64,000 nt of DNA from Neoechinorhynchus agilis (GCA_051530055.1 CM121343.1:2636389-2700388), one strand, 5' to 3'; shown: positions 7,990-39,040, counted from the first letter of the stretch. Notes: generated by a model not told the origin, from the sequence alone. Translations and numbers: made by a program.

Positions 7990-8040
7990 GCTCTTTATTG
8001 TTGGTTTCTGCGTTTCATAAAAACTAATCACACAAGCCGG

Positions 8041-11988: not shown

Positions 11989-14900
11989 TTAATCTTTAAC
12001 GACATATAATTTTGGCTGTTTTGCATCCATACGTCTGAATACAACGTTGACGTTATCAGAACCAGTAGCTGTTCGCTTCTCACAATCATTCTCTACGTTT
12101 TTGACCTCTTTTTTCACTTTTTCAATTTCATCTTTGATTCTTTGTTTAGCAGCTTCGATTCGCTTAAATCGCAGAACTTGATGATCTAACGTAGAAGCGA
12201 AATTGTAACTGTAACGGCAATAATAGTTTTTCCAAAGTCGGATGAATCTCATTGAAGGTATCAAGTAAATAGTTTGTTTGTAGCCGTGAGTGGATCCGGG
12301 CGAGTAAAATGGATTTAGAAAGTCTGTTCGATTTTGAAGGACGTAGGACCACAAGGAAACCGTGTTAGACGCTACCCTCTGAATACTCCTTTCTCTTTCA
12401 GAATTACAAATAAAAGTTCCAAACTGGCACGAGTACAAATGGTCCAAAATCGTTATCAGGAAGTACTCATTAAATTCAAATGCACAACTGTACTGCCGTT
12501 GAAACTGATAGACAGCATCAATGAATTGTAGAAATATAGGTGATCGGTCGGAATCACCGTAGTTATCTTCGCCATGACCTACTCTCGTCATAAACTTATG
12601 TCCAAAACTAATCCATTCCTTCTCTATAAGCACCATAAATCCTTCAAGCGTCCGGTAATAACTGTCAAGCATTAGCATTGACAGAGACGTCAATTGGCTG
12701 GTTCTAATTTATGTAATCTTTCAAAAGAGTTAACTAACTAAGATCACACAAAATATCCCATCCATCGCTGCAATGAACAAGAACTGAAGTTGATCTCCGA
12801 TCCAAAGCAACAACGATTTTATGAGCACCGAGCATTATTTGACGTACGTGCCACAACCATTCAGTTGCTTCGAGATCTTTAAAAAAACTACGATCGTCTT
12901 TAACCATCGGAAATAATAAATCATGGAGTCGACGAAGACTTTCACGCATTACGTGAATGTTGCCAATGTTTAAAAACTCAAACTCATGCTCAGGGTAGTC
13001 CTCATATCCTCCACCCTTTGCCATATTAGCAACGGCATTCACTTTTGGGCGGGCATCTATGATATGACAAGTCCCAATAAAGCTCAAATGCCACTTCAGT
13101 TCGAAAACCGCGAAATAAACTGCAATCAAATAAAAATAATTTCAATGTTTACACTTAGACTATAGCAAGAAAAAGAATTATAAAATGACGGCAAAGTGGA
13201 CGCATTTCAATTGTATTATCTGTACAAATATAAAAGGTTCTTCTTCGCAAAAGACGATACTAAGAATCATAAATCCACTGGCATTTTAATTACTACAATT
13301 AAATTATTTAAAGATTTTTCGTGAAATTAACTAATTTCATTGACAATAACAATTTAATAACGGATTTTATTCATGCCAAAGCGCTCAAAGTTCCCATGGG
13401 AACGCACACCCAGCGGTCTTCTGAATTAGAATTTTAAGTCCGATGAGCCCTTTTTAAAGTTCGGAATTAAAAAAGGCTTAAGAGACAAACAATTAGGACA
13501 TCTCATTGTGCTCCCAGAAGCAATGAGGAGGTACCGGGGTATATTGATTAGTGGAATTTTTGTTTAGAAGTCAACACCAGCGGTAAATGATTATTTCGAT
13601 TAAAGACGTTCTGCGAACCTCGTAGGTGCAGACCTAAAGAATAATTCCACTTTCTTTTGGTAATTTCGTTACCCAGGATTTAAATTCACAACAAAAATAC
13701 TTTCTTTTGGCAATTTTGCCATCCCGGGTTTAAATTCACTGATTATTTCCGATATTTAACGTCGGATAATTCCGGCCATCCGAAGATAATAAATAAAGTA
13801 GTTAAAAAGTCCCGCCAATTGATTAATTTTAGTCTTTTGAGAGAAGATCGATATTTGGCTTACTATATGGAAATTGAAAAATAAAAACACAAGATCAAAA
13901 AACTAAAACCGAAGCAACACTTGACTTGTCAAATCTTCGCTTCGCGAATCGAGTCATACAATATAAAGGCGACGTGATTGTGTAGGATTACAGGCCGCCA
14001 ATGCCGCAAGATAATTTTTATCGAATTCCGATTCACTTACTCGTGAACTCGAACCGCTTAAAATCCCAGTCATTGGTTGAGCCGATCGAATAAGTGCAGC
14101 GTGGTTCCGGGCGTTGTACCAAGAAAGCACAGGGATTCGGTGTTTACTTCTGTGTTCCCTGACTCTCCATAGTGGCGAATCTTCGAGCGATTGTTGATTG
14201 AATTTCTCATCAAGATCGGATGAGTCTGAATTAGGAATTGCTCGATTTCGAACAGCCGGTCTAAAGGATGCCGGAATAACAAGAACGTTTGGATAAGTAC
14301 AGCAAAACTCATAGTTTTCATTGATGTTTTTCTCGATTGACCAAGGACGTCCATTACTCGATCCATGAGAATCATGCGGCAACCTCATACGCTCAAACTC
14401 CGCCATCTTTTTATAAACATTCCAGCCGTATTGAACGGCAGCGGCACCGCCGCCGCCCGGCATCGATAGAAAGTGATCGAGATATTCAGCAGCATATGAT
14501 GGCCATGGTGGATTACTTATTGAGCCCGACGGAGAATACCTCTTAGCAACCCAAAAAGTCCGGAAGTATAGATCATTGAACAATTGCTTACGAACTCTGT
14601 CGGTTTTCTTAGTAGACAAGCAGATATGTCGGATATCTTTACAGAATATCTCAATTCCGTATCCGGAATTGTTTGAAGTCGTTTGACCGCCCATCTTCTC
14701 AATACGGGATATGCAACCATAAGGAAGAGAAAATGAAACGTTTTCTTCATTCGTGGAGTTTGTATCGTATATGAACAACAATCGATAAGTTGTGAGAACA
14801 ACTCTACCGTTGATACTCTTTACTCCACTACCTCGAATCCAGCAAACGTCACCGTAGTGGATCGTATTAGAATCCGTGATTGTGTAAGGGGAACACTTCG

Positions 14901-15132
14901 AGACGGACCCAATCGAGGATGCCAGAGAAGCTGACGTAGGTGGTGACGTAACCAAAATGTTTATTGACGGCGTCAGCGGTGTAAATAAACGAGACGTAGT
15001 CTCAGCCAACAACGAGCGCCCCTGGTCTATCGAATCCTCGTCCGTGGTATCAACGGAAGGCCCCTCAATATTCCCATCATCACTCTTCCCCTCACAGTAT
15101 TTAACAACCTTCGTATGATGTGCCGAAGACAT
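11989..15132 (-). CDS. MTMR2: Myotubularin (MTM1/MTMR1/MTMR2 subfamily) PI3P phosphatase in three coding blocks separated by two TA-flanked inserts
   Basis: GRAM-like region, [67 protein letters not shown]. Confidence 0.92.
12705..12755 (-). other. TA-flanked 49-nt hairpin insert in the myotubularin active-site codons
   Basis: TA at 12754-55 and 12705-06; removing 12707-12755 gives TGG GAT AGA ACC (W-D-R-T). Terminal IR TTTTGTGTGATCTT / AAGATTACATAAAT (11/14). Confidence 0.85.
13058..13958 (-). other. TA-flanked 899-nt insert in myotubularin
   Basis: TA at 13957-58 and 13058-59; removing 13060-13958 gives Y-I-V-D-A-R-P. The ends share inverted TATGA and TGACAAGTC blocks. Confidence 0.75.
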
Positions 15133-16027
15133 TGTATCACATCAAGATGAAAACGTCAGAACGAGCTGTCTTTTGGTATTGTTATATCTTCCTATGCATT
15201 ACCGCTCATTCAAATATGTACTTTGGTCAGGCCGATTTTTTAAGATTTCGTCTTCTACGTGGGAGTTCTTCAGAATTGTTTCGAATGATAGTTTGTTGAA
15301 ACATTTTTGAAGGTGCTACACGTAGAGGACGAAATATTAATTATTTTTCTTCACTTCGCCTTGACCAATACTATCCATGGAAAGAAATTATGCATTATAG
15401 TTTCAGCTTCAATTAGCGATGTTTGATTTATCTTGAAAATTTTCGGCGGCTCGGCAATAGGGTTTCACATCAATGGCAGTGGGCATGAAATCTATTTTGA
15501 TGGCGTCGAGGTTCTTGCGAGGAGTGACGTAAGACGCGAAAGAGTGACTGTGGAAGTCATCATTATCACGCAAACAGGTACTTTTGTTCGGGCAACAAAA
15601 CTGACTGCAAACTCAGTCTTCGAGTCCCACCGGATAAACTATTTGACCATGCTTCTTTCAAATTGTAGATTGACTGAAGAAGGTCAACGAAAAGGCCGAA
15701 AATTTTCAAAATAAATCTATTTTCTGAATCAAACATCGCTAATTGAAACCGAAACAATCTATGGAATTCAATCAATCTCCATGTCTCGCAATGTTCAATG
15801 CATTTTCGCGGGGCCGAACTGGTTCTGCTTAAACGTTCTTTGTAATGCCTTAATGAGTATTCCAAATGCAGGCAAAGGGCAGCACAAATTACGAGATCCA
15901 TAACGGTGGAATGATTTCTGCTAGAATTAATGAACAGCAGCCGTGAAAAAAACCTCACTTCAACACAGAATAAATGTAACCGGCTAGCCTGACTTTAACA
16001 GATGAAATAATTGGCCCAAAATTTAGA

Positions 16028-16225
16028 TAGTTGTGTCGAGGTGGTCTAGGGGACTTGAGCTCCGAATCCCTGTTTCAGGGTCAAAGGTTTCAAATTCACG
16101 ATCACCGATGACATAGAACCAAAGGGGACGAAATACCTCGGTGAGGGGAGGAGACTCACTGATGAGTCCCGCCTCTTGAAGTATCTAATATCCGGATGGA
16201 TGTACAACTACTAACGCTGCCCTAC
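16028..16225 (+). mobile_element. tRNA(Ser-like)-derived SINE carrying a rearranged hammerhead ribozyme, copy 1
   Basis: Head TAGTTGTGTCGAGGTGGTCTAG..GGTTTCAAATTC with A/B-box-like motifs; aligns along its length with the reverse complement of 32766-32933; contains GGGGAC-GAAA-TACCTC and CTCA-CTGATGA-GTCCC. Confidence 0.75.
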
Positions 16226-18317
16226 GCATATCCAACCTTTTACAATCTTTCTTCTAACGTTTTCCAAAAACTTAATACCTTTCATAAGAGGTGCGTTCTA
16301 ACCTCTGAATTCGTGCCATTAGAAAAACACCTCTGATTTTTCAAAAGTGCTTTCATTCTCTTCCGCCTCAATTTCTACCAAACATTCCTCCTTTTACTCA
16401 CACAACACTCGCGTCGCCCCAACATTTTCCATTATTCAGTTCCTCGCACAAATATCTACCTCTGCTCTTTTTCCCAAACGTTAAATCTTCCAAATGCGAA
16501 TTGATTCGGAGGAAAGAGCCGAGGTACAAGGTTCGGTGCCTTATGCTTCTTCTTTTAAATGAAACGTGTTTATATAACCGCATGATTCTGGGTATTAAGT
16601 GATTTTATACGCTTCCTTGAACCATATCAGTGGACTGTATACGCCTAAGGAAAAATTATCACGCGAGCCATACAATACAAAACAACTAAAATCTTTCTAT
16701 TTTGTTATTTCGGAAAATTAAAATAATTTATTGAATTCGATATTTCGGCAAACTCGTGTGCTTTTATCAAGATTGTTTCCAAATTTTTACGGTGAATTGA
16801 ATAAATTATTTTAATTTTCCATCATAACAAAACATGTACAATTAATCTTTGAAATATAAAATCTTTTCAGATGACTGATATAGCGAAGCTGACTCGCAAA
16901 ACAGTTCAATAAAATAATTTTTATCTGTGAGAGATTATAATCATTACAATTCAAACTTTATCACCATGAAGGATTTTCTCTCTATGATTAAAAATTCGTA
17001 TGGTGTTCCCGCCGCGTTAATCCGTTTATGATCGTAGATATAAAAAGTCTTAGCTGAAGAGTTTGTGAGAAGGAAATTGTCTTAATTTTGGAAATATACA
17101 CTCTGGCTTTGTTTTATCGCTGAGATCATTAATAACCAAAAATTTATCCATGGGTGCTTTAAAATGAGTGGGAGCCATTCCCTAAAAATAATTGTGCTAT
17201 TTTGAAGTTATAAACGAAATGGTTGGGGTATAAATCGTCGATTGTGAATCCCCTTAAAATCCGCTCATTAACATGCTCGCCATTGGCGCGGAAACTTTCA
17301 GTCGAAACCAAGACTGCTGATAGGTTGAAACTTGACAGTTAAATAAAAGCGCAGATTAGAAAACGTTCATTTTCGGGCTTTGGCAAATTCTATCTTTGCC
17401 TTCATGGCATAAATTTTCAGGACCATTCCAAGCTAAGGTTAAATTGAAGGATTATATTTGATCACTCCGTAGGTTGGTTAGACGGAATCCAAAAACTAGT
17501 TCTTGATGTTAACGACTTGTTTCAATGTTTTCTTGAATCATCAATACGATCCTTGACAGGACTGTAATGGAGGAACGTCTACTTCGAAATTTTAGTTCTT
17601 GAAACTAAGCCCCTTTGGAAGTGTGAAGTCAAAGATTTATGGAAATTATTGTAAAAAGCATTTGATTTGTTAATGCAATTTTATAAGCTTATTCACTGGG
17701 AAAATTATTGATGAAGTGATTAAATGATAAGCACGATACTAAGTTACTCCTCACTTCTCCGAAAACGCCGTGATGTTTTTTAAAAACCGTTGCAAAATGG
17801 TTTATCCAGGTACGTTTTGGAGCGTTAAAATGCAGATATGAACTTTTATTGATACAATGGAATGAGTGCTTAATACAGGATAATTTGCTTTGTCAGTCTT
17901 TGCAGGTTAGAATTTTACGTTTGCATAATTTATATATCGTTAATTTCCTCCTGATAGTTATCATTTTCACCACATTGGAGGCACTGAGAATTCCCTAGAA
18001 ATCGTTCACCCGGGTTTTGGATGGCACTGATGGTTTTTTGCTCATTGAGCGGATTTCAATATTTTAGCGAAAATAAATGGTAACGATTTTATTGGCTTAA
18101 CACTAAAAAAATTATATTCTCGTTTTATTTCTCGAAATCGGTATAAGCTGGTAAGCCTGATACTTATTTTGTTTAAGCAGGACAGATATTGAGGCTACTA
18201 TTTTAATCAGACGATGGGAGTTTTGATATCCATCATGGACATTCGAAAGGAATGGTTAAAGACGAATGTATGTTTCGATTGATTAAATCAATCATTATCA
18301 ATTCAAGTTTAAAGAAA

Positions 18318-18473
18318 TAAGCACGTAAGGTCATAATCAATCACCCGGCATGAGCGTTTATTTGATTCGGGAACCCGGGAGCTGAGTGAAAGGCATGTCT
18401 TCGCCTAGTAACGATTCCGGGTTCCCGAGTCAAACGAACACTCATGTCGAGTAGCTGTAATCTTACGTTATTA
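18318..18473. mobile_element. TA-bounded MITE-like hairpin with long imperfect TIRs
   Basis: Left TAAGCACGTAAG..CATGAGCGTTTATTTGATTCGGGAACCCGG pairs with right CCGGGTTCCCGAGTCAAACGAACACTCATG..CTTACGTTATTA. Confidence 0.75.
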
Positions 18474-18882
18474 TTTTTTAGACTTGAATCAATAATAACT
18501 TATTCAATCAGTCGAAATTAACGATCCCTCTTGGGTGTCGAGGACCGACCAAAATAATAACCTATCTAACCAACCGAATGCAATCCTTAACGAAATTTCT
18601 CTTTAAATTGTCTTCACTGAAATATCTTAAGCGTGATGTGGATTGATGGTGTAATTTTAAAAATTCGGTACAAACGTGGTATTGTGTAGGCGACCGGTGA
18701 CCTTTTTGAGCAAAGTATTTGAGTGAAGGAGATTTGGTGGGGATGCAGATGATTAATTTCCGAAGAATCTTTTCGTTGAAGTATACCAAAAAATAAATGT
18801 ATATAAATTGTTTTTAAATTAGGCACAGATTTTAATTCAAAAGGACGTAATTCTGAGAACTTTTTGGTTCCATGTTTATTCT

Positions 18883-20771
18883 TTAGGCGGACTTATCGAA
18901 ATTAAAACAAAATCTTGCGATTGCCAGAAAATCATAGTCGATATTGGTTACAAAGTTGGGACGGGTAGGATATGAGATTAAATGCATATGGATGCTTTTA
19001 TTTAAAGCTTCAAGAAAATTTGACCACGACCTAAAATCGAATTCCATCATCGACGTACACTGATCAGAATAGAAAGTCGTCATTTCGTGTCGATTTAGGC
19101 TCTTTAGCTGAACGGTTTTGACCAAATTTCCTGCCTGTGTATTCTGAAGCGCCAATTTCCTCCAAGGTATTGTATTTTTCTGTTAATTCTTCGTACTTAC
19201 CTGAGCCGCTGGATTTTCGTTGTTTCCTCAGATAAATAGTATCGCCGTCATTTAGATCGCAATCGGCAATCGTCATTTTCTTGGACAACTCACTTCTCCT
19301 GCCATTTTTCGATCTAACCTTAAGATGATATCCCGATGTTGAGAGAGGCTTGTCATGAACCAGAAGCATTTCGATAAATCTCTCAATGGTTGTCGTATTC
19401 GCGAATTTCGGCGGACATTGCACTTCTTGAATTCTTGTTAAAATTTTATCTCCGAGTTCGAGCTTGCTATCTACATATAAGAGTTTTGATCCAGAGGAGC
19501 CTTGTGGTCGCATGGATGCACTTCTTAAGCTCATATTTCTAGATGCGTTTTAAAATAAGGATTAATCTCAATAGACTGTAACTCACCTGTCAGCATAGCG
19601 CTTTCGGTCCATATAAACAGCATGGGATTTATTATCATCTAATAAAAGGAAAGTAAATAATTTTAAATATAACGATGTTCAATCACCTTTCTTAACTGCA
19701 GCCCGGTACACTGACGGTTTAATGTATCGCACTTTTGGACTAGTATATTCTACATCTGTGCTTCTTTTCGCAAAGGAAAATCCAAAAGGCAAGATGCACA
19801 ATTTTTACTCTAGTCGGTAGTTCACTTGGATGAATATATGAACTTTGGGGAATCGATGGAGCCGCTTGGTAAATATGCGGTACTGAGTACGGATAATTGA
19901 AAGATGTGCTGGACGACGTGAGTTGTTGCGGCATGGTTTGTTCAGCCGTTGAAGTAGGCCATGACGGTGTTTGAGTTGTAGGAGACGGTAGTTGTGTTAA
20001 AGGTTGGCTCATCGATGGACTGCTATAGGATTGCAGTTGGTCTGGAGCAGTCCAGTACTGTGTCGTCCCCGGTGGGGCGGATAAGACGGCACGCGCATTC
20101 CCTAGAACGGGCTGACTTGCGGAACCGTGATATGGAATGGATGGCAGATCTTGTCCTCCTGCGGGGAGCAGAGTATTTGATGCGATCCCTTTTAAATTAG
20201 TGACATGTTGACAAACTGGGCACCTATTCATATATATATATGTGAGTTTGTTTATTTATTTTTATCCAATTTTGACTTACTGTATGGTTCCCCCGTAGAT
20301 GTGGCTATCAAGACAGTTTGAACAAAATGCATGGCCGCAGTTTAGTTTTCGGACGTCTGTAAGTGGCCGTGAACATTGAAAGCAATGGTGATTCAAATTG
20401 GCACTGTAAGCCCCTCCAACGTTCAATGGAGGCATATAGTTCCTTACACTATCGTAGTGATCGATCATACTATCACCACCTGGAGTGAGGGTCGACAGGG
20501 TGCCGTATTTTGAGCCATAAAGGTTAGAATCTTCAACAATATTCCCTTCGTCACCACTGCTGCTGCTACTATCGCTACTAACGACGAATCCCTGACTTCT
20601 TTTTATTTGTTTTCGTCGACGCCGGATAATCTTTTTTCGTCTTTTTTCCATTTTCCGTTTTACAAATACATTCTTGATCGTTTTCATGAACTGCAAAAAA
20701 TCAAATTGATTGCCACTTTGCTCGTTGGCGTATTTTTCATCGGCATAATTATACGAATCTTCTCCATACAT
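18883..20771 (-). CDS. C3HC4 RING-finger protein with Ser/Pro/Gln-rich middle and a possible ubiquitin-like C-terminal region; 3' end uncertain
   Basis: CFQCSRPLTDVRKLNCGHAFCSNC..(intron)..CPVC RING across a canonical intron; further GT-AG exons; KKMTIADCDLNDGDTIYL resembles the end of a ubiquitin-like fold. Confidence 0.65.
19751..19807 (-). other. Probable TA-flanked 55-nt hairpin insert in the RING gene
   Basis: TA at 19806-07 and 19751-52; removal joins to the only open downstream frame (R-V-E-Y-T-S-P-K). IR TGTGCATCTT / AAGAAGCACA (9/10). Confidence 0.55.
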
Positions 20772-21629
20772 TACGCCTTTTTACAGAGGGTTTCGATTAA
20801 CGATGATGCTCTTTGTTGAACCGTTTTCTCTCTCCTAAAAGCTGATTTGTTCACTCAAGCAAGCTGAGTTCACTGTTTAGAAGGCTTCAGGTACGTTTCT
20901 TTGAGCGTCCTGTGAGTCACTAGCAGTCGTCTTTTCCTTCACTTAGTACAATGCAACATAGAGTACGGCCCCGGCGCTTGCATTATGGTGCGTGAGTTAG
21001 AATGAGCGAATGTATAAGGCAAATTGCTTGCTGAGGTTGACGGTGTGAGAGACAATAGGAGACCTTTCCGGTAGCTAGTTAACATATTTGCTCGACCTTG
21101 CTGCATCTATGTGCCCTAGACTCGTATATTTGCCATATTTCTAATAAAAAAAGATTTTTTTCACATCAAACGATACGCAAAACCATAAATGATTCTTTTC
21201 AAATTTTATGCTCGAACAAATTTCAAACTTCTATTGAATTTTTGTGCCATCTTCATTGTGAAATTCCTAAAAAAAAGGTCTATGTGTATGCGTGGTTTCG
21301 ACGAAGCTTGTAACCGTATCTTTCACTAATCTGCAATCGTTTCCTAGATTTCTTTTTTTCATTTTCAATGAACACGTTCCCATCGGCGCTGGTCAAATAT
21401 TCGCATCCTGATTTTTGCGCGATGGACAACGGACCAAACGTTCAACATAAATTCTACATTCGTTTAAGCATTTTTTTATGTGCGTTTAGGTGAGTATACC
21501 GATTGTAAACATAAAATGGGCCTTAAAAGAGTCATTCTTACCAAGATGAGTAACTCTTCAGAATAAAACGCATGACATGACATTCGTATACTTAAGCTAA
21601 AAAGATTTTGAGAACAGTTGACCAATTTG

Positions 21630-23374
21630 ATGCTCGTTGAACTTACTTGGGTTCTAGTAGTTGCCGTAGTGACCTCGGTGGTTCTGGCAGCAAGTCTCGG
21701 TGCCAATGATGTCGGTAACTTCTTTGGGACATCCGTCGGTGCTAATGTGTTGTCTATTCGAAAAGCGTTTCTGCTAGCAGCCATTTCTGAGATTCTCGGG
21801 TCGGTTTTACTTGGTGAGAAAGTCTCGGATACAATATGGAAAAAGATTGTGAACTACAGTGATCTTAGAAATCGTGAAAGGTTTGTCATGGTGGGCAATT
21901 TATCTGCCATGATCGGCTGTTGCATTTGGCTTGTGATTGCAACCAAATTTAAATTAATAAGTGACGTGAGTGCCTGGATAGGTTGTTGTGATCTCCACAT
22001 CCATCTCGAAAATGAACACTAGCGTACACTGATACCTGTGTCGGCTACTCACAGCATTATAGGAGCCACGGTTGGGTACGCAATGGTTGCTCATGGAACG
22101 AAAGGAGTTAACTGGATTGTATTCATTAAGATTTTAATATCCTGGTTAATGTCACCACTTTTAGCTGGCACACTGTCCATGTTACTTTTATGGATTGTCC
22201 GAAGATTTCTGTCGACTGCTAATGAACCAGCGATTATTTTGATCAAATGGCTTCCTTTTATATATGGCTTTACAGTCATGATCAATGTCTTTTCTATTCT
22301 TGTAAATGGACAGAATACTCAGCTTCACTTATGGCAACAAGCAGTGATTACGACTTCACTGGGTATACTCGTTTCCTTGTTGGTTTGGTACTTTACCGTT
22401 CCGAGAATTACCAATTCTATACGGCAAATACTTGTCCCTTACTCAATAAAGTTACCTAAAGATGACGAAGAATACGACTCGAAACTGTCGGCATTGTTGG
22501 ACACAATAGAAAACTGACTTCTGGCTGGATACATTTGAACTATAAATTAGAAGCCATTTTTACAGTAGAAGAGGACAGTGTCCATGCAAAAGTTTCCCGC
22601 TATATAGATGACCAACCTTTAAACAACGATGAAGATATAAGTGCATGTAAACTGAAAGGAGAAAATCGCCGAAACTGCAGATCCATTGGACTTCAGGTCT
22701 ACATGGTGCCCGATCGTCATTTATCAACTGCTGGCAATAGTCAAACAGAATTCAGTTGTGTATGGGGTTCCGTAGGCGAAACACTTGAAAAATCACGCCG
22801 TAAATCCAAAATGAGATCTTTAGATGCTCAAACTAAAAAACCAGCTTTTGATAGACCTGACGTTGCTAAAATATTTGGCATTTTACAAGTAATGTCCGCT
22901 ATTTTTGGTAGCTTTACCCATGGAGGCAATGACGTTAGCAACGCTATTGCTCCATTAGTAGCCATATGGATGATATGGGTAACCGAATTAAACCTGATGG
23001 GCGCCAAAACTCCTTTATGGATCCTAATGCATGGAGGCTTATGTATTAGTATTGGAATTTGGTTCTTCGGAGAAGGAACGACCATTACTATTGGGAAAGG
23101 AATCACGTATGTTACACCGACTAGTGGTTTCGTAATTGAACTATGCAGTGCCATCGCTGTTCTAATTGCTTCGAATCTTGGGCTTCCTGTAAGTTCGACT
23201 CATTGCAAAGTCGGATCGGTCGTTTGCGTCGGTAGTTTAAACGGCGCTCGAGCTGTCAATTGGAAATTGGTTAGGAATATTGCTTTTGCGTGGACGGTGA
23301 CATTTCCTGCAACTGCTATTACTTCAGCCGGAGTAATGACTTTACTTATTCGCACAGTACCAAACCTTGATTAA
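21630..23374 (+). CDS. SLC20A: SLC20/PiT sodium-dependent phosphate transporter, interrupted by two TA-flanked inserts
   Basis: GANDVGNFFGTSVG, PVSATHSIIGA, HGGNDVSNAIAP, LGLPVSSTHCKVGSV signatures. Confidence 0.93.
21955..22034 (+). other. TA-flanked 78-nt hairpin insert in SLC20 containing an in-frame TAG
   Basis: TA at 21955-56 and 22033-34; removal gives K-L-P-V-S-A-T-H. IR AGTGACGTGAGTG (21960-72) / CACTAGCGTACACT (22017-30). Confidence 0.72.
22507..22567 (+). other. TA(GAA)-flanked 59-nt hairpin insert in SLC20
   Basis: Direct repeat TAGAA at 22507 and 22566; removal joins ORF 22038-22517 to ORF 22535-23374. IR AAAACTGACTTCT / AGAAGCCATTTTT (11/13). Confidence 0.72.
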
Positions 23375-25451: not shown

Positions 25452-25939
25452 AGCTTGGGCGGATGAAATTCAATTGTTCAATGTTACATAAGCAGCAATA
25501 AATGTTGGGGCCTTTAAAAGTGCCTTTTTCTTAATTAATTTTCTATTTACACGAATTTGCTCGGTATCTTCAATACGTTCGCAGCCTTGATTTTTCGGGA
25601 TTAGTGGAGGAGCAGAGCAATAATTTCTATCTCACGGCCAACTTCGGTTGGCAATTCTCGCGCAAACTCCGTAAATACGTGGATTTACTATTAAGTTACC
25701 GATTTCTCAACAATGTGTATTATCCCCAGGTTCCTCGCCTGAATTCAACTGAGTCTGCTAAAGTAAAGTTAATCGTAATTTAATATTTGGGTAGGGATAA
25801 GCCTTAAAGGACTAATTGGGTGCTCGTTTTCGAAGAACTCGAATTATCGTTGAAGCGTAACCATGGCAACGAAATCGCCAAAAGATCAACCCGAACAGAG
25901 AATCGCACTCGCAAACACATTGACGTGAAACTCATCTCC

Positions 25940-27577
25940 ATGTTTCGTGATCCAATTTTCTCCAGCCTTTACGACGAACAAGAGAGCAGTAGCTCTGAAG
26001 TTAGTGGACGTGACGGAGTTCAAGAAAACGAGAGATTTAAATTGGTTGATGACCTCAAAAACAAATATCGTTTAATATCAAAAATTTCCAGTGGTGCATT
26101 TGGGACGGTTTATCTTTGCAAAAATATGCTAACAAGCGAGGAGATGGCAATGAAGGTCGAAAAAGCAGATAAACGAAATTCAAAACTGTTCAAGGAATAT
26201 AAAATCTATCAAATACTTGGAGGGTACGATAATGGATTTCCGAAAGTGCACAATTATGGCAGGTTTGATAAAAACAATGCCATGACAATTGAATTGTTGG
26301 GCGAAGACCTTGAATCACTTTATAGCCACTGCGGTCGATCATTTAAGAAACTGCTGTTGACCGAAATTTGGTTTCTTTGAAAATGGTCAACAACGGTTCC
26401 AGTACCTTGCAAACAGTCTGTATGATAGCCGTTCAATGTCTCGAGCGGCTAAAATTTGTCCATGAAAAATCTTTGGTACATCGCGACTTAAAACCGCAGA
26501 ATCTAGTAATTGGAAGGAGATCTCATTTAAAACGGAAAATCTACTTAATTGATTTTGGTCTTGCTTGTTATTACAGAAGCACAAAGACTGGAAAATATTT
26601 CGATTATAGAGATCGAGGACCAGCCTTAGGTACCTTGCGATTTATGAGCCGTAAAGCTCATAGAGGAGCCACGCAAAGCCCCCGAGATGATCTTGAATCG
26701 CTTGGGTACCTTCTTGTTTATTTCTTAAAAGGAAAGCTTCCTTGGATGAATGTCATTGCTGAAACAGTGAAACAAAGATTCAATATAGTCGAAGATCTAA
26801 AGATAAATACTTCAGTCAAAGATTTATGCACTAATCTTCCAGGTTTGTATTCTATAGAATTCTATTTGTCAGTGCTACTCCACTCAGACGACTTTCCAAT
26901 CTTTGTTTTGGGTTTACTAAACCTTTTGAATTAATGATTAACATTCATTTGTTTTGCTGGGCTCTCCTCAACCCACGATTTGATGAGATGTAAGACACTC
27001 GTCCGTTTAAATGGGCAAAAAACCTTTTTGTCCGAAAGGAGCATTTTGTCTACAATGCAGGAGAGCCAACAGATTTCTATATTGGCCTAAAAAACGGTGA
27101 TCCTTGAAGGTTAATCATTCGCCTTTATTAGAATTAAGCAATGTCTCCAACCGCAGCAAACTATTTTTTGAGAATTCGAAATGGTCATTGGCAATAAAAC
27201 TTTTCGTTTGAAAAGTACTCTTTTATTTATAAATGTTCTGTTTAGACGAATTTGGTAAATATCTTGAATACGCACGTAAACTCGGTTATTATGAAGATCC
27301 GGATTATGATTACATGCGATCATTGTTTAAGAATTTGATGAAACGTTCAGGTTTTAAGAATGATTGCGGTTTTGATTGGGAAGATGAAAATCTATATTCC
27401 GTTGCAAATGTTGCACCAAGTGGATCGGCTCTAAGTGATATAAAAAGTAATGAAGTAGAAAATCGTAAATGCTTCATGAAGTCGTGTCGCCTTTTCCGAA
27501 GACGAAAAGATCAAGAACTTCCACCTTCGATTGAAACGTTGATTGAAACCAGTGAAGACGAGTCCAACCAAAAGTGA
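25940..27577 (+). CDS. CSNK1: Casein kinase 1 family Ser/Thr kinase (divergent)
   Basis: ISSGAFGTVY, AMKVE, MTIELLGEDLE, VHRDLKPQN, IDFGLA, GTLRFMS, RDDLESLGY, Y..DPDYDYMR. One canonical intron (about 26844-27246) and one TA-flanked insert. Confidence 0.93.
26344..26404 (+). other. TA-flanked 59-nt hairpin insert in CK1
   Basis: TA at 26344-45 and 26403-04; removal gives R-S-F-T-L-Q-T-V-C-M-I-A (CK1 consensus RKFSLKTVLMLA). IR GAAACTGCTGTTGACC / GGTCAACAACGGTTCC (14/16 pairs counting one G-T). Confidence 0.85.
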
Positions 27578-28554: not shown

Positions 28555-28750
28555 CTTAGCCGCTTTCGTCCTCAAATGTCGTCCGAATGCTTGCCATGTT
28601 GCCCCTCAACACGGCGGTGCTGATATTTTGAAACCGGTTTTAACCTGAAGGCGTCGCTTCAGATCCTTCAGAAGTTGAAGAGCCTCGCTACCAAGAGATC
28701 CGTAGGTCTCAACCCCAAAAGGCACAAACACATGGGCTACGGCTTCAAAT
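28555..28750 (-). mobile_element. 3' fragment of an RLE-type non-LTR retrotransposon (CRE-like)
   Basis: Minus strand reads HVFVPFGVETYGSLGSEALQLLKDLKRRL..NISTAVLRGNMASI, the C-terminal restriction-like endonuclease motif; homologous to 43574-43880. Confidence 0.7.
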
Positions 28751-29733
28751 AATAACAAACCTCGTGGATTTTAGTAGAAACGCTAAAAAGAAGACCTCAA
28801 ATTTAGACATTTGGTTCTTATTAATAGGAGTTTTTCTTACCAGCAAACCGTTAAAATCGACAAAACACTTCAGTACGCTCTATTCTGCTTCATCGAGCGG
28901 AACGGTGCCGACAGTCATTTTGCAAGCATTCCAGATATTTCATTTTCAACTCGAATTTCGGATCATGTAGGGGTTTTTCCCACACAATTTCGAACTTTAC
29001 TCACATTTACATTGGCGGCGACGGTTATGGAGCACATAAATTGCTCATTCATTGATTTCGTAAGTTAATTTTAGAATTTGTTACTTTAAACGTTTTGAAA
29101 TCGCTTTTAGATTTTGAATTTTTAAAGTTTTGATGACAGTTAAAATTGCCCCGTAGCTTGCAGAACGGTAGCGATTATGAAGAATTTAAGTGTTTCGTTA
29201 AAATCACTAACTATTTAATTGCTTAGTTGCCTTTGTATAACTTAAATTAGACTTTTTTAATTGAAAATAATGACTTTAAATAAAATGCGTAATTAAAACG
29301 AAATTCGAATTCGCTCAAATGCCATTTGGGTATTGAGAGGCGTTCGTTTTGATTGATTATTTTTGCTACGAATAAAGAAGACGCTACAATCTTACCAATC
29401 AATAATCAATATTAAATCTAAATTATCATGCCTATTTTACAATCGCGTCATACGACCGATTGACATTTATTAAATGATCTTAAGAATCTTAATTAAATTT
29501 TCACGTCGGTTTTTGATCTCGTTTTTTCATCTGAATTATTTTGTAGGGGTGCTCTTAAGAGTTTCTTCGATTACGATTCATGAAACCACTTTATTTCTAA
29601 TTTATCTGATAGTTACTTTGTGTATTTTTCGACGAACCCAACATTGGTACAGGAAATCTACAAAATAAAAAAAGATTTTTGGGTTCCTTCCTTTTCTTAA
29701 AGGAGATTACTCTGATATCTGCAATTCTAAATA

Positions 29734-31948
29734 CAGTAATACTTCGTTTATCCGGATTTATTGGGATCGGACACCATTCGGATACGATATTTCTCAGATA
29801 ACCGAAAATAAAAGTTCTTAACATGCGAAGGGGGTGGTTAAGAAAAGCGAAATCGGGGTGAAATTCTATAATTTTAGTTGTATTGATGAAAATAATCGCT
29901 TATTCGATCTCAGTGTACAATTGCAGGCCTTTGTTTCTTTTGCTGCGAGGTATCTGATTCTCTTGAAAACCAGTAGTTGAGTGGGACAACATTCTTATCC
30001 AGATAATGGACGTTTTGGATCATCAAAGTTCTACTGAATTTACTTTAAGAAACAATTTTCCCGAAACCTCTCAAATTAGGATATTTGTTCGGAAAATTAA
30101 ATACATTAGAACACCGTTTATCCCGGACACAATTCGGATAACCGAAAACCAACCGTGATGTGTTCTTTAGTTAAGAAAAGCAAAATCGGGGTGAAATTCT
30201 ATAATTTTAGTTGTATTGATGAAAATAATCACTTATTCGATCTCAGTGTACAATTGCAGGCCTTTGTTTCTTTTGCTGCGAGGTATCTGATTCTCTTGAA
30301 AAACAGTAGTTGAGTGGGACAACATTCTTATCCAGATAATGGACGTTTTGGATCATCAAAGTTTTACTGAATTTACTTTAAGAAACCTCTCAAATTAGGA
30401 TATTTGTTCGGAAAATTAAATACATTAGAACGCCGTTTATCCCGGACACAATTCGGATAACTGAAAACCCACCGTGAAGTGTTCTTTAGTTAGGAAAAGC
30501 AAAATCGTGGTGAAATTCTATAATTTTAGTTGTATTGATGAAAATAATCACTTATTCGATCTCAGTGTACAATTGCAGGCCTTTGTTTCTTTTGCTGCGA
30601 GGTATCTCGTTCTCTTGAAAACCAGTAGTTGAGTGGGACAACATTCTTATCCAGATAATGGACGTTTTGGATCATCAAAGTTTTACTGAATTTACTTTAA
30701 GAAACCTCTCAAATTAGGATATTTGTTCGGAAAATTAAATACATTAGAACGCCGTTTATCCCGGACACCATTCGGATAACTGAAAACCCACCGTGAAGTG
30801 TTCTTTAGTTAAGAAAAGCAAAATCGGGGTGAAATTCTATAATTTTAGTTGTATTGATGAAAATAATCACTTATTCGATCTCAGTGTACAATTGCAGGCC
30901 TTTGTTTCTTTTGCTGCGAGGTATCTGATTCTCTTGAAAACCAGTAGTTGAGTGGGACAACATTCTTATCCAGATAATGGACGTTTTGGATCATCAAAGT
31001 TTTACTGAATTTACTTTAAGAAACCTCTCAAATTAGGATATTTGTTCGGAAAATTAAATACATTAGAACGTCGTTTATCCCGGACACCATTCGGATAACT
31101 GAAAACCCACCGTGATGTGTTCTTTAGTTAAGAAAAGCAAAATCGTGGTGAAATTCTATAATTTTAGTTGTATTGATGAAAATAATCACTTATTCGATCT
31201 CAGTGTACAATTGCAGGCCTTTGTTTCTTTTGCTGCGAGGTATCTGATTCTCTTGAAAAACAGTAGTTGAGTGGGACAACATTCTTATCCAGATAATGGA
31301 CGTTTTGGATCATCAAAGTTTTACTGAATTTACTTTAAGAAACCTCTCAAATTAGGATATTTGTTCGGAAAATTAAATACATTAGAACGTCGTTTATCCC
31401 GGACACCATTCGGATAACTGAAAACCCACCGTGATGTGTTCTTTAGTTAAGAAAAGCAAAATCGGGGTGAAATTCTATAATTTTAGTTGTATTGATGAAA
31501 ATAATCACTTATTCGATCTCAGTGTACAATTGCAGGCCTTTGTTTCTTTTGCTGCGAGGTATCTGATTCTCTTGAAAAACAGTAGTTGAGTGGGACAACA
31601 TTCTTATCCAGATAATGGACGTTTTGGATCATCAAAGTTTTACTGAATTTACTTTAAGAAACCTCTCAAATTAGGATATTTGTTCGGAAAATTAAATACA
31701 TTAGAACGTCGTTTATCCCGGACACCATTCGGATAACTGAAAACCCACCGTGAAGTGTTCTTTAGTTAAGAAAAGCAAAATCGGGGTGAAATTCAATAAT
31801 TTCAGTTGTATTGATGAAAATAATCACTTATTCGATCTCAGTGTACAATTGCAGGCCTTTGTTTCTTTTGCTGCGAGGTATCTCGTTCTCTTGAAAACCA
31901 GTAGTTGAGTAGGACAACATTCTTATCCAGATAATTGGCATTCCACTG
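29734..31948. mobile_element. pogo/Tigger-like MITE expanded by an internal tandem array
   Basis: TA|CAGTAATACTTCGTTTATCCGGAT at the left and ATCCAGATAATTGGCATTCCACTG|TA at the right form imperfect CAGT-type TIRs with TA flanks. Confidence 0.6.
29837..31935. repeat. Tandem array, about 6.5 copies of a 319-bp unit (first copy 333 bp)
   Basis: Unit starts at 29837, 30170, 30489, 30808, 31127, 31446, 31765. Confidence 0.97.
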
Positions 31949-32523: not shown

Positions 32524-33199
32524 AAAGAATCGCTTTAATTGAAATATTTCGTCCAATCACACAAGAATTCTCCAGTCAGTTATTTCTCACTAATTTAACA
32601 ATATTTTTATGGAGATTGGCCAGCCGGTAGCTTATATCAATGTGTGGCCTTTTATCACACGCGGCTGATAATTTTTGGTCACACAGCCCACGGATTTGGT
32701 TCAGAGAAGTATTTCAATTACTCAATGCACTGAACCATCCGGTAAAAGAGTTTGTGCATTTCTACGGATCCTCAGATACCTCCAGGAGGCGGGACTCTCA
32801 TTGGTGAGTTTCCCCCCTTCAGCGGTATTTCGTCCCCTTTTGGTTGCGTGTCATTGGTGGTAACGGTTCCGAACCACTTGACCCCTAATCGGGATCGCGG
32901 GCATTAGTCCACTTGATCACCTCGACACAACTACGGAATGTACACAACCAGCCAATTTTACATTTATTAATTCAAGGCCATTGAATTTTTGAATTTTTAT
33001 GAAGATTGGCCAGTCGGTAACTTATATCAATGTGTGACCTATTCCCAAAAATTATCAGCCGTGTGATAAAAGGCCACAGATTGATATAAGTTACCGGGTG
33101 GCCAATCTTCATAAATAATATTGTTAAAGTAGTGAGAAATAATTGTCTGGAGAATTCCTGTGTGATTGGACGAAATATTTCAATTAAAGTGATTCTTTG
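32524..33199. repeat. About 155-bp inverted repeat pair with an extra partial direct copy
   Basis: 32524-32679 is the reverse complement of 33044-33199 with scattered mismatches; partial direct copy at about 32995-33040. Confidence 0.85.
32766..32933 (-). mobile_element. tRNA-derived SINE with rearranged hammerhead, copy 2
   Basis: Minus strand GTAGTTGTGTCGAGGTGATCAAG..GGTTCGGAACC head, then GGGGAC-GAAA-TACC, CTCA-CCAATGA-GA-GTCCC, GAGGTAT-C-TGAG. Confidence 0.75.
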
Positions 33200-33240
33200 A
33201 TATATAATTTTTAGGTGTTCTTCACCCAGTAAAAGATTAT

Positions 33241-33337
33241 TTATTAAAGACGTTTCGAACCACGTCAGGTTCATCATTACTTCTATTGTATTTTAGAACT
33301 GCTGATGAATCCGACGAGGTTCGAAAAGTCTTTAATG
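33241..33337. ncRNA. Two divergently oriented Penelope-type minimal hammerhead motifs (both degenerate)
   Basis: Minus copy 33241-33284: GTAATGA-T-GAACC-TGACGT-GGTTC-GAAA-CGTC-TTTAAT. Plus copy 33291-33337: CTGCTGA-T-GAATC-CGACGA-GGTTC-GAAA-AGTC-TTTAAT. Confidence 0.65.
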
Positions 33338-33399
33338 CAAAAAACTATTTACCGAGTGAAGATCTAAACAATAATCCTAATTATATTAAAAAATTATGG

Positions 33400-33900
33400 T
33401 TGATTGCGTTGCCCAATGTGTTGCGAAACATACACATATAGCAAAGAATGTCGCAAAGGCAAGCGCAAATAACCGGAAAGAGAAATCTTCAGGATGAATC
33501 ATTATAACTGATTTTCGAAACATTTCGCTCGATCTGAAAAGCAAATGAGGCTTCACAATAATTGACTATTACGATATAGTAATTCACCTAAATTCTACAC
33601 CACTGAGAATAACTTCCAAATAACGTTCTTCTTTTTTGATGGATCCCAAATATGGTATGAATCGTTGTATAACATTCGGGTAACTTGACCCGCTTTCCCG
33701 CAATCGATCTTTCTTTAGAAATACTACGGCTAAATGGTAAAGTTTTGTCCTAGTCAAAAGATAATAGAGGACTTTGTGCTTCTTCCAATTACTATTAATG
33801 GCGAAATACGAGTAACATTTTGTATTGAAAAGCGATGAATCATTTGAGAAATTCCGGTGTCTAACATCTTTTCTGTTGAGCAACTCATTTACGAACGTTT
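33400..33900 (-). mobile_element. Decayed Penelope-like element fragment (post-RT linker)
   Basis: ORF 33584-33883 contains HKVLYYLLTR..LRESGSSYPNVIQRFIPYLGSI, resembling the PLE H..SL..RA / NGYP / LPY motifs; lies beside hammerhead-bearing repeats. Confidence 0.4.
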
Positions 33901-34361: not shown

Positions 34362-35622
34362 ATGACATCCGAGAAGTCCAATCAGATACCAATTATATGC
34401 CATGGACATACTAGACCAATCACTGATCTAAAATTTAGTGGAATAACCGATTCCAGTTATATCCTAATTTCCGGCTCAAAAGGTAAACGCATTTCATAAA
34501 TCAGAGTTTGCTCAAAAAGAGAATTATTGAAGATGGGAACCCCATGATTCGTGAAGGCGATACTGGTGATTGGATTGGTACGCTTGTAGGCCACAAAGGA
34601 GCCATCTTCGGAGTGGCCATAAATAAGGCAGGAACAATGGCAGCCACTGCTTCCGCGGATTACACTATGCTAGTCTTAAAGTTTTTCATTCTTCTTATTC
34701 AGAAATTTATAGGAAAGTTTGGAATGTTGCCAATGGAATTCTTGTTCATGATTTCGAAGAGCAACATGTCGTTAAATGTGTTGACATATCACAAAGTTCT
34801 AAATATGCCATTACCGGATCGGCGAAAAACACCATTGCCTTATACGACATTGAAAGGGGCGAGGGTACGAGTTTGAATTGATCCAATGCTCTTTCGTCTA
34901 CTAGAAATACCAGTTAATAGCGTATACGAACAACATTCTGATAAGGTGAACAAAGTGGGTTTCACTTCCGACAAAACGTTTGTCTCAACCAGCAATGACC
35001 GAACGGTCAAGTGAGTTTCTATTTAAATACATAGATTAGATAATAACGATATTCGAGTTTAGTTTCTGTGATGTCCGAGTTCCAACTTTAGTCTACAGCC
35101 GATTAAACCTGGAACAACCTGCGGTGGGTCTCGAAATCAACTTGGATTACTCATACATGACATTTGTTCATGGGAAATGTGTATCATTCATCCGAAACTT
35201 TTGGTAATCGTCGTAAATTCTTTGTTTCATAAACTTATTCAAACAGTCCACATGACTTGATTCGTGCTGAAATGGAATGTCAAATGTCATCAGCAAGCAT
35301 TCACCCAAGGCAAGATCGTTTTGTCTGTGGTGGTGCCGATTTTAAACTCTACGAGTATTCTATTCCTCAAATTACTGAAATCGGTTGGTTTATGGTCATA
35401 AAGAAAATAGTACGACGCTATATCCTTCTTTTTTGTCCTTCAGCTTCGTATCGATCGCATTTCGGAGCAATCCACTGTGTACAATATTCACCAGACGGCG
35501 CCTTATTTGCAAGTGGATCTGAAGATGGAACTATTCGACTATTTCAGGAAGACGTCGGTAAAACTTATGGCCTCTGGAGCAACAGCCGTGAACCAGGAAT
35601 ATCAGCACAGGCCATTCAGTAA
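34362..35622 (+). CDS. STRAP: STRAP/UNRIP WD40 protein
   Basis: IICHGHTRPITDL, KDGNPMIREGDTGDWIGTLVGHKGA, HFGAIHCVQYSPDG..ASGSEDGTIRL..GKTYGLW; short introns, one with a GC donor. Confidence 0.93.
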
Positions 35623-36008: not shown

Positions 36009-36049
36009 CAAGTGGCTTAAATGGTTATTCTGCTCTCACACGCGTTTAT

Positions 36050-36560: not shown

Positions 36561-36612
36561 TTTTTTAGAACTGATGATGAGCCCGACGAGGTTCGAAACG
36601 TATTTAATAAAA
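36561..36612 (+). ncRNA. Best-preserved Penelope-type minimal type I hammerhead
   Basis: CTGATGA (36571-77), T, stem II GAGCC/GGTTC around CGACGA, GAAA (36595-98), palindromic CG, cleavage triplet GUA (36600-02), weak AT-rich stem I. Confidence 0.7.
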
Positions 36613-37626
36613 AAATTATTTAAAAGGACCAGCAATCGATGATCGTTTATTGGAAATCGAATATTCAAGATAAAATATTGTTCCCTGGCGCCAGCGGACT
36701 ATTATTCGCTAGAAAACTAAGAATTTCTTCTGCCAGCGGCAATTTGACTCGCCGACACGTTCACATAATTTTTTATCCGCTTTACTGAGGTTCAATGGGT
36801 TATTGAGCAAATAGCGTATGCAAGAATACGCTGCGAATTCATCTCAATGAGAGGAAAATTTTGATAACGAGCCTGCCACGATGATAGCAGGCAAATCAAA
36901 ATAGAGAAAGAGAGCGTTAAATCTCAAATAATGTTTTTCTAGGAAGAAGGTGCAGCAATAAATGAACGTGCTTCTCATTTTCAATAAAGATGAACGAGTA
37001 AAACAGCGGACTTTCTGAAAATATACATTTGCAAATCTGTTATGTAAAACGTTTTGACTTCGAAACTTTGAGCGATATGATTATCACTACAAATCGCCCT
37101 GATTCGCCATCTAAATTTATTTCCATCTCTGCTCATTTTTGTGGAGAAAAAGGATGATAGTGGCAAAGAATGGTTCCGACATTTCAGAGCAGATTATGAA
37201 GAGCTGCCCGCGGTCTAAACCCCAATTTTTGAAAAAGATTTCATTCGTACAAAACCGAAAGGCAGTTTATATCTCACAGTAAAATAACTACGATTGTATG
37301 TCGACATGTAGATAGAATTTCAAATGTGGAATATTACAATTAATATCACTTTATTTTGGTAGCTACAACACCTCGTATTCAAACTGACTAATTTATTAAC
37401 GATATTTCACGTAGGACAATTCCGACATTTCTCCAAGATTTGTCATTGTAAATTAATCTAATCGATTGATTAATTATCGGTAATAAATTAGTCAGTGTTA
37501 GAACTACCAAAAGAAGGTATTGAATTTTAAATTGGAGTTTCACTCACATAAATTAGATTCACTTATTAATACAATTTTAATTTCCATCTTGCTATTGATG
37601 TGAAAAAAGATCTTGAGGGCAATTAT

Positions 37627-39040
37627 TCAAATATTGACTTCACTTCTTCGCCGTCCGATTGCAACTAGGCTTCTGGACCGTGAAGATTCGTGATTGTTCA
37701 TCATAATGCATTTTTTCCAGCTTCTTAAGGTTTTTGGGCACCAAATCCAACTGGATGAAGCGATTGCGACCGTGAGTATAGAAACGTGTTTGAGTAAGAC
37801 GACATTTTCGAAAGCGAATGGATTAAAGTTGCAAACCACTACGACGAAGGATGGGACAAGATAGAGGACGGAGAATATTCCAATCCTGAACATGAGTGCT
37901 TCCAACTTCCGTGCTCCGGAGTCGTGTTTTATGATAGTTCTTGTTCGAAAGAGGCTTGCGAATCCGAGTAGAAGAAATACACATGAGCCCATTAGATGGA
38001 TAACATGAATGGCTGATAGGACCGTATGGACCGAAGATTTCGGCACAGTTGTGCAAATGTAGTTTAAGGGATCGAATTGGATTTGATTGGGGTTCGATGA
38101 AGTCATCCATACGATTATTACGAGCGCCAGAGGGAATAAAACGATGAAAATGCGGATCCACCTTGTGAATCGTCCGATTGCTTCGTGGCTCCATTTAAGT
38201 GAGGCAGCGAGGAACCACGTAAGTCCGAGACAGGTGAACCAAATCGAGCCACTTATCCAGGAGCTTTGGATTGAAATGAACGTGGACGCACAGTGGAATT
38301 TGGATAATTCAGAATTATCACGGTTGAGATGTCTATTGAATATTCCACTGATGATATAGGTCAAGGCCAAAGGAACATACATGAGGCACATTACGCAAGT
38401 ACAGAGTTCTGGGTATCTGAACCGGCGTCGATCAATCATATACACCTGATTGAACTTAATTTAGTAGTTGAAATGCAAACTCCCCTTCTTTTGATGAGAA
38501 AAGTTCAATCTTCGGTTAGCTGCTGAGCGTAATCGCGCTTGAGATGAGTGTAAGAGACGACATTACCAATAGGAACTTCTGATGTTCTTTGATTGAATTA
38601 CTAGACAGTTGCAGATTGTTAGGTCGTTCGTCGAATGACAATGATTGATCAGTAGTCAAAATGTCATCTTCTGGTGGCTGAAAGCAAGTGCTTGCGTCCC
38701 GAAGAAGACTCCGACACTCATGAAGATTTGGACATAGTCGGAGACAAAAGGACAAACATGGAAGCAGAACAATTGGATCACCTTCCTCCGATTCAACGTT
38801 TGTACATACAGGAGCCAATAATGAGCATAAAACCAATTTGGATTTACATTGACGATCTTCAGCGAACTTATCAAACATCTCACTCACCTCCATTTGATTT
38901 CTATGCATTAAAACGTTTGGCATTCTTGTTGAGTTCCATGGCATTTGCAAGCATTGGGGAACTCGAAGCGGCTCACATTGACCAAGTGCGTCCGGAACAC
39001 TCACAAACCAAATAAGTGCGTTTAGTAATATAAAGACCAT
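37627..39040 (-). CDS. FZD: Frizzled family Wnt receptor (streamlined), split by one TA-flanked insert
   Basis: Signal peptide from ATG at 39040, 10-Cys CRD (CEPL..C..MPWN.T.MPN), IDRRRFRYPE, TWFLAASLKWSHEAI, KLEALMFRIGIFSVLYLVP, C-terminal KTLRSW. Confidence 0.93.
38441..38518 (-). other. TA-flanked 76-nt hairpin insert at the end of frizzled TM1
   Basis: TA at 38517-18 and 38441-42; removal gives I-T-L-S-S-Y-M-I-D, the same length as consensus F-T-V-L-T-F-L-I-D. Perfect 10-bp IR at 38448-57 and 38501-10. Confidence 0.82.

Follow-up and report, generated by a model that had tools for sequence, protein, structure and literature searches.

TA-bounded inserts with terminal inverted repeats in conserved genes of the acanthocephalan Neoechinorhynchus agilis as probable transposon-derived non-canonical introns

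A 64,000-nucleotide (nt) stretch of the genome of Neoechinorhynchus agilis (Acanthocephala; assembly GCA_051530055.1, sequence CM121343.1, 7.8 Mb), hereafter the window, contains six inserts that interrupt four conserved genes, encoding a myotubularin-related phosphatase (MTMR), a PiT/SLC20 phosphate transporter, a casein kinase 1 (CK1) and a Frizzled protein (FZD). Three more were found in two unrelated 20-kb loci, L003 and L004, on CM121342.1 (16,375,937 bp) of the same assembly, which brings the DNA examined to ~104 kb. The inserts carry the signature of Tc1/mariner-type elements, that is, a duplicated TA and terminal inverted repeats (TIRs), as the original prediction had proposed: TA stands at both ends of all nine, and a significant TIR is found in most. 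We consider it probable, judging from the sequence, that they are old insertions of elements resembling miniature inverted-repeat transposable elements (MITEs) into exons, which would be removed from pre-mRNA as transposon-derived non-canonical introns beside ordinary short GT-AG introns. The assembly (N50, 16.4 Mb) is a hybrid MaSuRCA/Hi-C product made from pooled whole worms, and its deposited gene models are BRAKER predictions with mRNA-seq evidence (PMC12690905). The origin of the DNA agrees with the proteins it encodes, because the MTMR segment is nearest to that of Pomphorhynchus laevis (60% identity, versus at most 55% for other animals) and the CCT4 protein of the window groups with that of P. 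laevis in a distance tree.

The six inserts of the window measure 49, 899, 78, 59, 59 and 76 nt and lie where they had been predicted. In gene orientation, TA opens each of them and a second TA follows directly after its end, and owing to this repeat three boundary registers yield the identical product. Two inserts link the three open reading frames of the MTMR gene (11989..15132, minus strand), which has no canonical intron. MTMR_a (12707..12755, minus strand, 49 nt, 13-bp TIR, z 2.7) splits the catalytic CSDGWD/RT motif of the phosphatase, while MTMR_b (13060..13958, minus strand, 899 nt) lies between YIV and DARP and has a 13-bp TIR whose 5′ arm begins 21 nt and whose 3′ arm begins 1 nt inside the insert. 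The SLC20/PiT gene (21546..23374, plus strand), which is split in two in the deposited annotation, is interrupted by SLC20_a (21955..22032, plus strand, 78 nt), between KFKL and PVSATH and with a weak TIR (z 0.4), and by SLC20_b (22507..22565, plus strand, 59 nt), in a variable cytoplasmic loop and with a TAGAA direct repeat and a 13-bp TIR (z 2.7). The CK1 gene (25820..27577, plus strand) has one TA insert (26344..26402, plus strand, 59 nt, 14-bp TIR, z ~4), placed between GRSF and TLQT, and one canonical GT-AG intron (26843-27245). The Frizzled gene (37627..39193, minus strand), which encodes a CRD and a seven-transmembrane (7TM) part, has a 76-nt insert (38443..38518, minus strand) with a perfect 10-bp TIR (z 4.7) between LSS and YMID, where the first transmembrane region begins. 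The frame is shifted by five of the inserts, and the sixth, SLC20_a, ends in an in-frame TAG, which agrees with the expectation of five frameshifts and one stop.

Each junction was tested by joining the flanks with one TA kept and aligning the product to solved homologues. The claim that such removal restores the family consensus (GWDRT, YIVDARP, KLPVSATH, RSFTLQT and LSSYMID) held at all five of these junctions, where the alignments were gapless: the MTMR joins CSDGWD/RTSQ and LYIV/DARP against human MTMR2 (5gnh), the CK1 join GRSF/TLQT against CK1-gamma-1 (2cmw), the SLC20_a join KFKL/PVSATH against the Thermotoga PiT transporter TmPiT (6l85), and the FZD join LSS/YMID against FZD1 (8j9n). 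For SLC20_b, which falls in the variable loop, the support is the reading frame alone. The TA joins predicted at the nucleotide level are CATTGCAGCGATGGATGGGA with TAGAACCAGCCAATTGACGT for MTMR_a, AGCCACTGCGGTCGATCATT with TACCTTGCAAACAGTCTGTA for CK1, and GCGCGATTACGCTCAGCAGC with TATATGATTGATCGACGCCG for FZD. All reading frames that flank the inserts, including those of L003 and L004, are intact, with no further stop or frameshift in frames of 500-730 aa, apart from a 14-nt gap annotated in one gene of L003.

The pattern extends beyond the four genes in which it was first noticed. In L003 and L004, whose candidates were first spotted by their split deposited gene models, three TA-to-TA inserts with TIRs interrupt a REXO/SDN1-like exonuclease gene and RPUSD4. 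The insert of the exonuclease gene (L003) is 244 nt long, and its removal gives the join VLKL/YHPYIIDT, gapless against 5z9x. RPUSD4 (L004) has two: RPUSD4_1, of 598 nt and with a perfect 13-bp TIR, and RPUSD4_2, of 56 nt, whose removal gives the join SHL/AFVLQCP, gapless against human RPUSD4. Across the nine inserts, eight junctions are gapless against solved homologues after TA-to-TA removal, and TA is the boundary repeat in every case (6/6 in the window, 9/9 with the additional loci). By our own estimate TA occurs with a probability of ~0.1 per site at the local base composition, and its presence at 9/9 boundaries is therefore far beyond chance. The CK1 and RPUSD4_2 inserts have a common 5′ context, CATT/TAAGAA (26344-26353 and L004:13300-13313), which is absent from the other seven and resembles a GTAAGA donor with T replacing G. 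The deposited coding sequence of the REXO-like gene implies, for its frame, a gap of 14 nt at L003:3348-3361 (GTTGCCTTTTAAAG, flanked by an AAG repeat), which is too short for a normal intron; a micro-intron, an indel of the assembly and a correction in the annotation are possible readings.

The same DNA provides an internal control, since the window also has at least 16 ordinary GT/GC-AG introns, mostly of 40-60 nt: a BEACH-domain gene has seven, a STRAP-like WD40 gene six, and the CK1, RING and BTB genes one each. Those of the BEACH gene (plus strand; 5463-5514, 5730-5777, 5919-5977, 6196-6683, 6849-6894, 7198-7248 and 7333-7389) are all canonical GT-AG introns with no significant TIR. The STRAP-like gene (introns within 34483..35443, plus strand) has five GT-AG introns and the only GC-AG intron of the window (34669-34712). 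The RING gene had been thought to harbor a probable seventh insert, but the sequence in question is an ordinary GTAAGT..AATAG intron (20224..20280, minus strand). Because ordinary introns occur in the same window, the TA inserts are a second class beside normal splicing and no replacement for it. When inverted repeats were scored against shuffled sequence (500 shuffles for the full set of nine), the TIRs distinguished the nine inserts from the 19 canonical introns of the same loci (Mann-Whitney p=4e-5), being a feature of the former and not of the latter. In the window, five of the six inserts have z scores of 2.7-4.7 and every canonical intron is below 2; the TIRs are 10-14 bp long and start 1-6 nt inside the TAs, except for the 5′ arm of MTMR_b. 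Thus, the claim of TIRs near the TAs in all six stands for five, the repeat of SLC20_a being weak. With the additional loci, z is at least 2.7 in 7/9, RPUSD4_2 reaches 2.0 (p 0.05), and the TIRs span 10-16 bp. The helix is nearly equidistant from both TAs in seven of the nine, which is what a palindromic element ending at the TAs should show. The base composition of the inserts is that of introns, and strand asymmetry (AT skew), taken as a sign of RNA-level selection on the inserts, was not significant.

Related structures also exist between the genes. TA-flanked hairpins with TIRs of 15-26 bp occupy nine intergenic loci of the window, compared with 3.1 in shuffles. One MITE-like hairpin with a 17-bp TIR (15241..15339) lies just upstream of the MTMR start codon; another (37376..37500, 18-22-bp TIR) lies just downstream of the Frizzled stop codon, and a palindromic element with a 26-bp TIR (39669..39756) is located upstream of the same gene. 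A TA-flanked palindrome at 32998-33113, whose perfect 13-bp TIR abuts the TAs, encloses at its center another TA-flanked palindrome (33018-33091), and a further hairpin is found at 33242-33334. Two of the long inserts resemble such elements: an internal stretch of ~75 nt in MTMR_b is ~75% similar to window 33242-33400, which includes the intergenic hairpin there, and an internal part of RPUSD4_1 is ~75% similar to the hairpin at 37376..37500, on a different chromosome. The MTMR orthologue of P. laevis contains nine introns, the majority with ordinary GT-AG termini, and N. agilis MTMR has none of those nine. Because P. laevis has no intron at either of the two insert sites, the inserts appear to be gains at TA sites in a gene whose old introns were lost. 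An Rfam scan of the window gave nothing.

Taken together, these features suggest a route by which the inserts might have arisen. A non-autonomous, MITE-like element of the Tc1/mariner/Stowaway style would insert at a TA in a coding exon and duplicate it, and the host gene would stay functional if the element and one TA copy were removed exactly. Such removal would most likely take place in the pre-mRNA, where the TIR stem could bring the two TA boundaries together. Exact removal would be required, given that the TIRs are degenerate, that close copies were not seen, that the flanking frames are intact and conserved, and that the protein matches, from a database which includes N. agilis proteins, show no intact MTMR paralogue of this species. 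The RNA level is favored by the animal (Fritillaria) and protist precedents described below, by the origin of the assembly from whole worms, and by the recovery of more complete BUSCOs from transcripts than from the genome: for the eukaryote set, 71.0% complete and 7.5% fragmented in transcripts versus 58.4% and 13.7% in the genome (PMC12690905). Because the ends share only TA, an RNA route independent of the spliceosome is also conceivable. Some form of structure-guided removal, with no requirement beyond a TA at either boundary and a hairpin to close the insert, is a minority possibility, of which a spliceosome-independent cut-and-join of RNA, like that suspected in euglenids, would take the larger part, itself rather improbable, and DNA excision in somatic nuclei, like that of the internal eliminated sequences (IESs) of Paramecium, the smaller and still less probable one.

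Several observations weigh against the interpretation of the inserts as transposon-derived introns. Their ends have nothing in common beyond TA, and they carry fewer pyrimidines toward the 3′ end than 16 canonical introns do (fraction 0.51 versus 0.60, p=0.036), so that standard recognition by U1 and U2AF is not evident from the sequence. The TIR of SLC20_a is not significant, and no other copies of the short inserts occur in the ~104 kb, which leaves their membership of a family unproven. RPUSD4 has an extra non-canonical gap (L004 12818-12871) that is neither TA-to-TA nor GT-AG and has no TIR; it reads either as 54 nt with TA..AA ends, in which case the protein aligns to human RPUSD4 without a gap, or as 57 nt with AT..AG ends. 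Given this sequence, the rule set may be wider than TA-to-TA, and further kinds of non-canonical end may be permitted in this species. Moreover, we infer from the sequence each of three steps: that the inserts are removed at all, that this occurs in RNA and that the stem participates. Finally, in-frame GT-AG options exist at four inserts, namely, MTMR_a (GTGTGA..AATTAG), MTMR_b, SLC20_a (GTGAGT..CACTAG) and CK1 (GTTGAC..TCCAG).

These options speak for ordinary splicing at nearby GT/GC-AG sites, by which the proteins would have small lineage-specific indels and the TAs and TIRs would be incidental. SLC20_b and CK1 also end in CAG, and by eye AG-ending shifted registers are possible for FZD and RPUSD4_2. 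When all in-frame GT/GC..AG deletions around the six window inserts were enumerated, however, no set of them served all six, and the existing options disrupted conserved motifs: each adds 1-10 residues within such a motif, and that of MTMR_a deprives the CX5R loop of its catalytic Arg, while the TA rule is gapless. No GT-started in-frame option exists inside SLC20_b or FZD (the REXO insert was not enumerated, and RPUSD4_1 was judged by eye). At the boundaries that restore the protein, GT/GC..AG is found in none of the nine inserts in any of the three registers, CK1 and SLC20_b being TA..AG, and neither the AT-AC rule nor the TTAA ends of piggyBac fit any insert. The statement that no single GT-AG or AT-AC rule covers all inserts is thus in agreement with the enumeration. 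The deposited models, which were guided by RNA-seq, include ordinary introns yet break at the TA inserts and leave the GT-AG options unused. MTMR is deposited as three genes, and SLC20, REXO and RPUSD4 as two each; the first SLC20 model ends at the stop within SLC20_a, though the GTGAGT..CACTAG option is present, and SLC20_b is crossed in the deposited model by a 245-nt gap. Of Frizzled, the deposited model covers the 174-aa CRD alone, and the 7TM region (37627-38445, minus strand) has no annotation. Among 5.8 billion proteins, no same-species match of near-100% identity spans the junctions. The deposited annotation also fuses the C-terminal third of MTMR to a downstream C2/PDZ gene in a 666-aa model (8041-12672, minus strand). 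Because ordinary splicing would in addition leave the TIRs and the TA in 9/9 unexplained, we regard it as improbable.

It seems just as improbable that the inserts are never removed, in which case the genes would be recent pseudogenes, null alleles or truly split into separate polypeptides. Many genes have been lost in acanthocephalans (PMC12690905, PMC12256650), and the deposited annotation does present the pieces as separate genes. This explanation would, however, place nine insertions in six conserved genes of ~104 kb without other stops or frameshifts, the REXO gap aside. The degenerate TIRs and the lack of close copies in this DNA indicate that the insertions are not recent, yet the downstream exons are still ~60% identical to P. 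laevis; the MTMR split falls within the catalytic loop; and duplicated BUSCOs amount to only 1.8% (PMC12690905), with no intact MTMR paralogue among the matches. An artefact of the hybrid assembly or of polishing is very unlikely. The pooling of worms and the 14-nt REXO gap might hint at local errors, but each insert is a unique sequence of 49-899 nt with its own TIR and a TA duplication, which no known artefact makes, and the inserts have an intron-like base composition and relatives between genes. Translational bypassing (ribosome hopping), as in gene 60 of T4 or the mitochondrial byps of Magnusiomyces, is the least credible explanation of all. The inserts are mostly short and form hairpins, and a stop codon stands at the start of the FZD insert and four codons into SLC20_b, but the boundary repeat is only 2 nt, without matched take-off and landing codons, lengths of 244, 598 and 899 nt, as in three of the inserts, are well beyond the reach of hopping, and the genes are nuclear ones translated in the cytosol.

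The IESs of Paramecium offer the closest parallel for removal from DNA. They are bounded by TA, leave one TA behind, are short and single-copy, interrupt coding sequence and are thought to be derived from Tc1/mariner elements. The inserts of N. agilis resemble them in having TA at both boundaries with one TA retained and in being mutually unrelated. Programmed, precise DNA excision, in somatic or expressing nuclei, would make the assembly an unexcised, germline-like form, and it would account for the requirement of exactly one TA in the product, for single-copy inserts in coding sequence, for like elements between genes and for the lack of common splice signals. We know of no animal, however, that excises sequences precisely from within coding regions. 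In Paramecium it is PiggyMac that cuts the sequences out of the DNA, in a somatic nucleus of its own kind, and no hairpin is required, and the IES end consensus TAYAGYNR was not recognizable in N. agilis, where none of the 18 insert ends has TAYAG. The TIRs differ among inserts, so that one sequence-specific transposase could not recognize them all. Furthermore, because the assembly was made from whole worms (PMC12690905), general somatic excision should have made the insert-free form dominant. For these reasons excision from DNA appears doubtful, and removal from pre-mRNA as transposon-derived introns is preferred.

For removal from RNA, the nearest precedent is the larvacean Fritillaria borealis, in which Henriet et al. 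in 2019 reportedly described non-canonical introns derived from MITEs. Elements with TIRs and target-site duplications (TSDs) are removed by the spliceosome in this animal (PMC13326754, PMC11282704), and ~95% of its introns are non-canonical, mostly with AG/AC and AG/AT as termini and with a YAY repeat of 3 nt (Soo et al. 2026, PMC13326754). The inserts of N. agilis likewise occur in an animal, have TIRs and short direct repeats at their boundaries, and lie at lineage-specific positions in conserved genes; their ends are likewise other than GT/AG, their pyrimidine tract is poor, gene predictors overlook them, and they share the TA that the YAY repeat, often TAC, contains. The two systems are nevertheless distinct. 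Ordinary GT-AG introns are in the majority in N. agilis (at least 19 versus nine), the inserts share only the 2-nt TA, and the host is an acanthocephalan rather than a tunicate. The rule of AG/AC-AT ends with a YAY repeat fits none of the nine inserts in any register. In addition, spliceosomal removal has been shown in Fritillaria, whereas the inserts of N. agilis are known from sequence only.

Protists provide further parallels. The nonconventional introns of euglenids coexist with conventional ones, lack GT-AG ends and a pyrimidine tract, and have a stem near their ends (PMC11282704). The inserts of N. agilis share all three structural features, and in both cases the stem lies a few nt inside the ends, where it could bring the boundaries together, the repeats are TSD-like, the junction is of the pyrimidine/purine type and the length varies widely. 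In the euglenids, however, CAG/CTG is conserved at fixed stem positions (+4..+6 and -8..-6), while no common stem sequence was found among the N. agilis inserts; the euglenid introns also follow no TA rule and are excised as circles after conventional splicing. Introner elements of Amoebophrya have inverted repeats of 8-20 nt that join the intron ends and direct repeats of 3-5 nt over the boundaries, for which a hairpin model has been proposed (PMC7789003). Inverted repeats near the ends and direct repeats at the boundaries are common to them and to N. agilis, but those of the dinoflagellate form repeated families with variable direct repeats, and its U1 is apparently absent. As for the Stowaway and other Tc1/mariner MITEs, the likeness lies in the TA target-site duplication, the TIRs, the small size and the lack of coding capacity. 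Such elements in coding exons destroy the gene, and the N. agilis inserts differ from them in having short and degenerate TIRs that begin 1-6 nt in from the TA, and in that the short ones have no conserved terminal motif or family copies in the ~104 kb.

Other features of the DNA lie apart from the inserts. The CCT4 gene of the window (40111-41736) is intronless and unusually divergent, with 55-60% identity to all other animals. Five long tandem-repeat arrays lie between genes, at 1771-2815, 30063-31935, 47605-50529, 54492-56344 and 62540-63098, with units of 348, 319, 191/375, 192 and 98 nt, respectively, in 3-15 copies that are 90-99% identical. Decayed coding fragments of mobile elements (43553-43831, plus strand; 28609-28770, minus strand; and 58000-62200) derive from an unclassified transposon protein (two copies, related to proteins of N. 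agilis and of a butterfly), from the endonuclease of a long interspersed nuclear element (LINE) and from an integrase core (rve) of the long terminal repeat type. In L004, a tandem array of ~12 units with a GIY-YIG domain (4200-9300), annotated as three genes, adjoins an apparently intact LINE (16000-18900, minus strand) that encodes an endonuclease and a reverse transcriptase in frames of ~500, 160 and 300 aa.

The original prediction knew of no description of this exact class in an animal, which is borne out only in part. Transposon-derived introns with TIRs and TSDs are known in F. borealis and in protists, but we did not find a description of the TA-to-TA rule, of its coexistence with a majority of normal introns or of an acanthocephalan host. 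No paper with both "Neoechinorhynchus" and "introns" was found in the literature searched, and the N. agilis genome paper never uses the word "intron" (PMC12690905). For the accession of the assembly there was no paper, and those for the accession of the chromosome were all unrelated. Public RNA-seq from 74 worms exists, and the question of removal is therefore directly answerable. The matter has practical consequences. Genes that bear such inserts come out split or truncated from standard gene finders and from splice-aware aligners, and part of what is recorded for acanthocephalans as gene counts, BUSCO scores and massive gene loss may accordingly be artefactual. Removal from DNA, if it is the route, would be the first case known in an animal of a precise elimination of DNA from within genes. 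If they are removed from RNA, Acanthocephala would be the second animal lineage, independent of Fritillaria, to have turned exon transposons into non-canonical introns, and the simpler rule of a TA and a hairpin, operating beside normal introns, would make N. agilis a clean system for the study of relaxed splice-site recognition.

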